From Octopus sinensis (Eukaryota): a DNA stretch of 57,608 nucleotides. The stretch is taken from contig NW_021833593.1 in the NCBI RefSeq assembly GCF_006345805.1, forward strand, positions 1-57,608. The letters run 5' to 3'. The notes beneath the pieces were generated by a model. That model did no database searches. It was not told the DNA's origin and saw only the letters and a program-made list of their open reading frames with translations. A program made the translations under genes and the position numbers. This document shows, piece after piece, positions 49,537 through 49,826 of this stretch. Every line of letters starts with the position of its first letter. Position 1 is the first letter of the stretch.

Positions 49537-49826
49537 TCAACGATGTTCTTCAATCATGGTTTTCAGTTGGCACTGAAGAGGCCAACGACGGTCGGATGAC
49601 CTGCAGTGTTGGCCATGGGGTTAGCTAGGGCCCCATTGCTCCAGTTGGGCATAACCTTGCAGTTGCCATTACCCCGGTTCAGCCTTGCCGGTGACACGCC
49701 TGTCACGGCAACAAGCAAGGCGAGTGTCAGTGTGATGGCCACATTTGAGATGCCTCCTCTCCTTCCTCCTCCTCCTCCTCCTTCCACTCCTCCAGCTGCT
49801 TTATTGCTGCAGCCTGGCCTTTTCAT
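49537..49826 (-). CDS. SELENOP: SELENOP first coding exon (MKRPG...VAITLTLALLVAVTGVSPA...CKVMPNW...NPMANTAGHPTVVGLFSAN-U-KP-U-LKNIV)
   Basis: Acceptor TTTCAG upstream of 49845, CAAAATG start at 49826, GTAAGT donor; C...P.W....PM......TVV.L..A.U aligns to the SelP N-terminus; TGA at 49565-49563 and 49556-49554. Confidence 0.9.

Follow-up and report, generated by a model that had tools for sequence, protein, structure and literature searches.

Can the resolving cysteine (Cys) of the SELENOP redox centre become a second selenocysteine (Sec; U in one-letter code)? The question is raised by a 57,608-nt stretch of Octopus sinensis DNA (positions 1 to 57,608 of contig NW_021833593.1, assembly GCF_006345805.1; this whole stretch is referred to as the window), the minus strand of which carries a SELENOP gene whose redox motif reads U-K-P-U, with in-frame TGA codons at residues 88 and 91. 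An original prediction, made from the sequence, had proposed that Sec had replaced the resolving Cys of this gene and had described UxxC as normal in SELENOP, and UxxU with a diselenide as the mark of selenoprotein L (SelL); this description agrees with the literature (PMC2397514; PMC13134290). The comparisons reported here indicate that the second TGA is real, that it arose recently from a Cys codon, and that it is probably read as Sec.

A U-K-P-U redox motif in an octopus SELENOP gene

The gene is composed of three coding exons on the minus strand, comprises about 1076 codons with 50 in-frame TGA codons, and is the only SELENOP copy within the window. The motif and the exons are as follows.

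49554 to 49565, minus strand: TGA AAA CCA TGA, the U-K-P-U redox motif (Sec88, Sec91), read directly and identical in O. vulgaris
49537 to 49826, minus strand: coding part of SELENOP exon 1, from its translation (ATG at 49826; GTAAGT donor at 49536-49531)
48363 to 48563, minus strand: SELENOP exon 2, thioredoxin-like N-domain, LEKIHH...ILYD-R (AG acceptor at 48565-48564; GT donor at 48362-48361)
44204 to 46942, minus strand: SELENOP exon 3, with the end of the N-domain, a Ser-/Asn-/His-rich linker and the Sec-rich C-terminal domain (AG acceptor at 46944-46943; TAG stop at 44206-44204)

When the reverse complement was read from the ATG at 49826, the frame of exon 1 contained two TGA and zero TAA or TAG codons up to a consensus donor, and its translation comprised, in order, the start codon, a Gly-rich stretch, a hydrophobic segment (VAITLTLALLVAVTGVSP) that is signal-like by eye, the first beta-strand and the redox motif. 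The two TGA codons are located at 49565-49563 (codon 88) and 49556-49554 (codon 91), in the context ACC GTC GTT GGC CTC TTC AGT GCC AAC TGA AAA CCA TGA TTG AAG AAC ATC GTT GA/gtaagt (TVVGLFSAN-U-K-P-U-LKNIVE); the original prediction had read A-N-U-K-P-U-L with Sec at these residues, and the same codons and coordinates were recovered. The exon 1 donor lies 7 codons and 2 nt past the second TGA, a spacing common to all three cephalopods compared. Since the bases between the two TGAs include no GT, codons 88 and 91 cannot be parted by a splice donor; a donor ahead of the second TGA had been named as a finding that would speak against the motif, and the donor lies downstream instead. Exons 1 and 2 are joined in phase (phase 2; GA/G, encoding Glu), at the same position in Argonauta and Sepia, and the junction of exons 2 and 3 is read straight across by O. 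bimaculoides A0A0L8G0Z9 (97% identical) and by O. vulgaris CAI9743234.1, which is identical to the window over exons 2-3. Exon 3 contains 48 in-frame TGAs and, before the Sec-rich region, a His-rich stretch (HPHHPHRHQHYPPPHHH) seen in the translation.

The spliced N-domain, with Sec written as Cys, matched Pfam SelP_N (PF04592) over residues 54-210 with 83.1 bits (cut-off 23.2; E=2.5e-23). SelP_N was the sole Pfam family matched at E<=1, and it is also tagged on the orthologues from O. bimaculoides, O. vulgaris, Argonauta and Sepia. Most of the homologues that profile searches gave came from spiders, the only cephalopod proteins being A0A0L8G0Z9 of O. bimaculoides and P0002; a homologous-protein search with the spliced N-domain, in which the Sec positions were written as X, returned no matches, and the full representative protein search was performed with exon 2 alone as the query. 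An exact-protein look-up of the exon 1 open reading frame (ORF), the linker ORF and the O. bimaculoides protein found no record, and a metagenome pattern scan gave 0 matches. The P0006 locus was set aside as uninformative, its apparent 'MLC' start being translated intron. By every homology test applied, the predicted octopus protein is a SELENOP, as had been proposed, and the gene in the window is assigned to SELENOP of an Octopus from the O. vulgaris group.

The segment that precedes the first TGA, TVVGLFSAN, had been said to match the segment before the human redox motif, and a tblastn alignment with human SELENOP does run through it, ending one residue before the human Sec. In the human, Sepia, Argonauta and Pinctada-like sequences, the residue aligned with codon 88 is Sec. 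The N-domain of SelP proteins has a thioredoxin fold in which UxxC corresponds to the thioredoxin CxxC, and their conserved N-terminal region contains a single Sec (Lobanov et al. 2008, PMC2397514). The best match among PDB sequences was the thioredoxin-like 2m72_A (E=0.0016), the C-K-P-C of which aligns exactly on the octopus U-K-P-U, with G-K-P-x-I-I-S-F-F-A-T-N-C-K-P-C-L-R in 2m72 facing G-H-P-T-V-V-G-L-F-S-A-N-U-K-P-U-L-K in the octopus. This alignment, those with human SELENOP and the cephalopod orthologues, and the equivalence of UxxC and CxxC place the second TGA at the resolving position, and the Cys of UxxC is absent there, codon 91 being TGA in both the window and O. vulgaris. A search for a conserved recoding stem-loop after the first or second UGA (UGA1, UGA2) in the spliced Octopus, Argonauta and Sepia mRNAs revealed no shared structure.

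The motif is present in a second Octopus genome

The comparison locus of O. vulgaris (L002; GCA_951406725.2, OX597841.1) was reached via a mis-annotated protein. A 53-nt stretch over both TGAs (L002 46371-46423) is identical to the window, and the introns of the two loci are 3-9% different with many indels; the lengths of a GGA repeat and of microsatellites differ as well. Because independent and otherwise divergent assemblies carry an identical TGA AAA CCA TGA, a sequencing error shared by both is very unlikely. The prediction had named confirmation of the second TGA as its first check, and in the independent O. vulgaris assembly codon 91 is likewise TGA, not TGT or TGC.

UxxU in Octopus is derived from UxxC

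The motif was read in three further molluscan sequences.

L001, Argonauta hians (octopod; GCA_054771915.1): TGA AAA TCA TGT, UKSC
L003, Acanthosepion/Sepia pharaonis (decapodiform; GCA_903632075.3): TGA AAA TCT TGT, UKSC
L004, Pinctada-like Logan transcript (bivalve): TGA CCC ATG TGC, UPMC

The human SELENOP motif is UYLC. Because codon 91 is TGT in Argonauta and Sepia and TGC in the Pinctada-like transcript, UxxC is judged ancestral and UxxU derived via a single TGT>TGA change, which the Octopus lineage, on this comparison, acquired together with a Ser>Pro change just before it, after the split from Argonauta. Alignment across molluscan SELENOPs had been suggested as a check on the view that the resolving Cys has become Sec; the aligned relatives are all UxxC, the Octopus genomes are UxxU, and the Cys-to-Sec change predicted for the SELENOP redox centre is, on this evidence, both real and recent. 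Such conversions are reportedly observed only across very great evolutionary distances (Ticó et al. 2026, PMC13134290), and a Cys>Sec change at a catalytic motif within the octopods is therefore unusual.

The region past the second TGA is under selection

Between the window and O. vulgaris, the 215-codon N-domain (645 nt) shows 1 difference, a synonymous change in exon 2, where about 19 would be expected at the intron 1 rate of 3%. Exon 1 has 0 mismatches apart from a 9-nt difference in the length of the GGA repeat; mismatches amount to about 3% in intron 1 and about 5-9% in intron 2. In the 372 nt past UGA91 there is 1 difference as against about 11 expected at the 3% rate (Poisson P about 2e-4). 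Each TGA of the window is also TGA in O. vulgaris (50/50), and the SELENOP frame of O. vulgaris runs without interruption for 1142 codons, of which 62 are TGA and none is TAA or TAG, the equivalent of exon 3 being located at L002 48676-51604. Evolution is fast in the linker and the Sec-rich parts, where 22 synonymous and 22 non-synonymous differences separate the two Octopus genomes. Because 1 difference stands against about 11 and all TGAs are conserved, the region past the second TGA is taken to be under purifying selection and thus to be reached by read-through as selenocysteine; the pattern speaks against a dead N-domain and is the one to be expected if translation passes both UGAs as Sec.

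The Sec-rich exon differs in repeat number and carries a frameshift

Two features of exon 3 bear on its reading frame and its Sec content.

44617 to 45076, minus strand: 75-nt tandem array of 6.1 copies, with the unit UQUPSMAVUQUPKEVGQNGEVKMTS (4 Sec), from Tandem Repeats Finder (TRF) and translation
45544 to 45546, minus strand: loss of 1 nt (CC>C) compared with O. vulgaris, shifting the frame of exon 3, from pairwise DNA alignment

The 75-nt unit is present in 6.1 copies in the window and in about 10 in O. vulgaris (L002 about 50420-51190), with 50 and 62 Sec codons respectively, and because the copy number differs the Sec-rich array is thought to evolve by gain and loss of units. At the deletion the window reads GCATCCA-CGCC where O. 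vulgaris has GCATCCACCGCC, and the two frames overlap over 45601-45214; exon 3 of O. vulgaris is without the 1-nt frameshift. The frame that follows the frameshift is open for 465 codons in the window, with 44 TGAs conserved, and for this reason the deletion is likely an indel of the assembly; if not, it would be a lesion of very recent date.

The linker of the window also has a 69-nt in-frame insertion (AMSLPKKKPQKKYVYRHNPKTST) relative to O. vulgaris, at about 46695-46762 on the minus strand. An adjacent in-frame TGA pair (W-Q-U-U-R; 44331-44326, minus strand) lies 40 codons before the TAG and is conserved in O. vulgaris; translation may end either at the TAG at 44204 or already at this pair.

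A candidate SECIS element lies downstream of the stop

The 8.3 kb 3' of the stop were examined for a Sec insertion sequence (SECIS) by a relaxed scan with five requirements: AUGA, 8 or more pairs out of 11 in helix II, AA 9-16 nt after the AUGA, GA, and 6 bp or more in helix I. Exactly one candidate was obtained, with its AUGA at 42776.

42700 to 42788, minus strand: candidate SECIS, from the relaxed scan, 1.4 kb 3' of the stop

The core of the candidate consists of AUGA (42776-42773), AAAA 12 nt later, a CCC/GGG mini-stem and GA (42733-42732), and in helix I CGUUUGUUCU (42788-42779) pairs with AGAACAAACG (42709-42700). Helix II is 89.5% paired (26-53% with a slid partner strand) and shows 2 compensatory pairs between Octopus and Sepia. 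The candidate is identical in O. vulgaris, within a surrounding 400-nt block that is itself 97% identical, hence this comparison is not discriminating. The Sepia equivalent is located 130 nt after the stop of the Sec-rich ORF (L003 36134-36175), and the signature ATGAATG-N9-AAAACC occurs once in the O. vulgaris locus, once in that of Sepia and nowhere else among the fetched loci. Runs of C flank the core, with 11 C at 42716-42726 (internal loop) and 9 C at 42789-42797 on the minus strand; the 11-C run is absent from the Sepia counterpart. Altogether, the element at 42700-42788 is a probable form-2 SECIS, represented by effectively two independent sequences.

No second SECIS was found besides the 42776 candidate, and two strict SECIS scans gave nothing useful. 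Candidates at 43946, 44340 and 44595 were rejected for a poor helix II or for their location inside the ORF.

Annotated gene models and other features of the locus

All public gene models of the SELENOP locus are distorted near the in-frame TGAs (CAI9743234.1, A0A0L8G0Z9 and two A. hians models). The O. vulgaris model (L002 10001-48832) joins exon 1 right past the second TGA, coming from bogus upstream exons; the O. bimaculoides protein A0A0L8G0Z9 (UniRef) begins at an internal Met and ends at the next TGA; and SELENOP of A. hians is annotated as two 'genes' that flank the motif (L001 9653-9991 and 10001-12658). Elsewhere in the window, an 875-codon plus-strand frame at 17050-19677 has very low complexity (poly-Asp, -Pro, -Asn, -His and -Gln) and no significant Pfam match, and may be an exon of a neighbouring gene. 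A tandem array with a unit of ~22 nt (ATGAACAGGGGGTGAACAAGGG) occupies 14500-15420 on the minus strand and is the source of many spurious ATGA...TGA pattern matches.

Proposed mechanism and alternative explanations

The first UGA of SELENOP is said, in the 2019 work of Baclaocos and colleagues and in earlier processivity studies, to be decoded inefficiently, and later UGAs efficiently. In the explanation that we favour, the ancestral cephalopod U-K-S-C became U-K-P-U in the Octopus lineage via TGT>TGA at the resolving position. The mRNA is equipped from the outset to decode dozens of UGAs via a SECIS in its 3' untranslated region and the Sec machinery. For this reason UGA91, 9 nt past UGA88, would most likely be read as Sec by the SECIS-dependent machinery that also decodes the other 48-60 UGAs, so that full-length protein would still be made. 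Oxidised Sec88 would then be resolved by Sec91, and an intramolecular diselenide would replace the selenenylsulfide of ordinary SELENOP, which has been reported for the rodent protein (cited in PMC8230778 and PMC2397514). The diselenide would have a much lower redox potential and would need a strong reductant, and a low redox potential is documented for the UXXU diselenide (PMC6054048). We infer insertion of Sec at UGA91, diselenide formation and any change in activity, and regard it as probable, with room for doubt, that the TGT>TGA change at the resolving codon led to a UGA91 that is read as Sec and to a diselenide of Sec88 and Sec91, as in SelL.

Several observations weigh against this mechanism. 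The U-K-P-U motif was found in only two, closely related, Octopus genomes, and with two genomes the conservation of exon 1 says little on the TGA itself; the decoding of UGA91 as Sec is a step that we infer from selection alone. The frameshift in exon 3 of the window could mean an assembly error or incipient decay. Rfam in gathering mode detected no SECIS in the window or in five further loci, and in E-value mode it detected none in 40000-44400, 42650-42850, 43840-44440 or the Sepia 3' flank; the candidate found by hand has an unusual 22-nt 3' internal loop with its run of 11 C.

The most serious rival, though one we think unlikely, holds that UGA91 is read as Sec but that the Cys>Sec swap is neutral and drifted to fixation with no new function. 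Such a swap would cost little in an mRNA that efficiently decodes 50-60 UGAs; it is young, being absent from Argonauta and Sepia, and it occurred in a gene whose linker and Sec-rich parts change fast, as the 22 synonymous and 22 non-synonymous differences attest. Set against this, UGA1 is reported to be the inefficient step, so that another UGA next to it need not come without cost. Cys and Sec are frequently interchanged in the C-terminal domains of SELENOP, but conservation of the N-domain motif is otherwise strict, SelPs having one Sec in their N-terminal region (Lobanov 2008, PMC2397514), and a diselenide and a selenenylsulfide differ strongly in redox potential, that of UXXU being low (PMC6054048).

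The remaining alternatives deny that a second Sec is inserted. If UGA91 were a stop, the N-domain would be cut after 90 residues and the gene would be decaying, or would yield its product by rare read-through only; TGA terminates by default, exon 3 of the window is frameshifted, and every public annotation steers around the TGAs. This is nevertheless improbable in view of the 1 synonymous change in the 372 nt past UGA91 as against 3-9% intron divergence, the conservation of 50/50 TGAs, the 465 codons that stay open after the frameshift in the window, and the O. vulgaris gene, which lacks the frameshift and keeps a frame of 1142 codons without TAA or TAG. Still less credit can be given to adenosine-to-inosine editing of codon 91 to UGG (Trp), a proposal that draws on the general knowledge that coleoid cephalopods edit many codons: with Trp in place of the resolving residue the redox motif would be lost, the mRNA has 49-61 other UGAs that must be read as Sec, and no obvious conserved double-stranded structure surrounds the site. 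Least probable of all is that an error of sequencing or assembly turned TGT or TGC into TGA, since the identical motif occurs in the independent O. vulgaris chromosome assembly, which differs elsewhere in the locus, and since the change is a substitution and not an indel like the likely 1-nt error in exon 3 of the same window, which could otherwise be cited in its favour.

Comparison with known systems

SELENOP of Sepia and Argonauta resembles that of Octopus in the architecture of exon 1, the position of its donor, the flanks of the motif (VVALFSAN-U-K-x-x-LKK/MKN) and the homologous exons 2 and 3, and differs in having U-K-S-C (TGT) where Octopus has U-K-P-U (TGA). Sepia also has a last exon that is very large and Sec-rich, containing 85 in-frame TGAs, together with an equivalent SECIS-like element; its intron between exons 2 and 3 contains a 5S rRNA match (L003 30264-30381, minus strand; Rfam 70.5 bits, E=1.4e-12). 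In Argonauta hians, the search of the 10 kb that follow exon 3 (L001 12660-22658) gave no Sec-rich open frame; its SELENOP may have a reduced C-terminal domain or a last exon that lies farther away. A gene for ribosomal protein L37e lies at the end of the L001 locus. Human SELENOP has in common with the octopus protein the SelP_N thioredoxin-like domain, Sec at the first position of the motif, a His-rich linker and a multi-Sec C-terminal tail; however, its motif is U-Y-L-C and it contains 10 Sec in total, compared to U-K-P-U, 50-62 Sec and a tail of 25-residue UQUP repeats in Octopus.

Among bivalves, oyster SELENOP reportedly has 46 UGA and that of a freshwater mussel up to 132 UGA, in figures attributed to Baclaocos and co-workers (2019). 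These molluscan proteins are alike in their very many UGAs, and the Pinctada-like transcript shows the same N-domain, but the transcript examined has U-P-M-C. The UGA richness of molluscan SELENOP is described as built by modular repeat expansion (PMC8230778). Bacterial thioredoxin-like proteins of the TlpA/ResA type (PDB 2m72) are similar in local sequence around the motif, and the fold relationship is also given in PMC2397514; in contrast to the octopus protein, both of their motif positions are Cys, and they lack Sec as well as a Sec-rich C-terminal domain.

The closest parallel to the motif is SelL, an aquatic-animal protein of thioredoxin fold that also has two Sec spaced by two residues at the CxxC position and that is reported to form a diselenide via UxxU (PMC2397514; PMC13134290). 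SelL is, however, peroxiredoxin-like and unrelated in sequence, whereas the octopus domain matches only SelP_N in Pfam, and UxxU is ancestral to the SelL family but has recently arisen from UxxC in octopus SELENOP. By these comparisons the octopus protein is not a member of SelL, and the resemblance is one of motif only.

Implications

A literature search for UxxU in SELENOP found nothing relevant, the survey of Baclaocos et al. 2019 and its supplement being outside the coverage of that search, and the motif is apparently undescribed in this family. Among thioredoxin folds, SelL provides the only known natural UxxU redox motif, and the N-domain motif of SELENOP is described as UxxC with a single Sec. 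It is conceivable, and we put it forward tentatively, that a catalytic Sec-x-x-Sec diselenide has evolved independently in a second natural thioredoxin-fold protein, Octopus SELENOP, via a geologically recent Cys-to-Sec conversion of the resolving residue.

The recent switch from UxxC to UxxU, with close UxxC relatives in Argonauta and Sepia, constitutes a matched natural pair in which it can be asked what a diselenide does beyond a selenenylsulfide, and which reductant recycles it. The location of a second UGA three codons (9 nt) after an inefficient first UGA also bears on models of processive Sec incorporation. If the proposed mechanism is true, the gene would offer a natural test of how quickly the ribosome turns 'processive' for Sec insertion at the rate-limiting first recoding site, as well as a test of the idea that systems able to reduce diselenides exist in aquatic animals (Lobanov 2008, PMC2397514).
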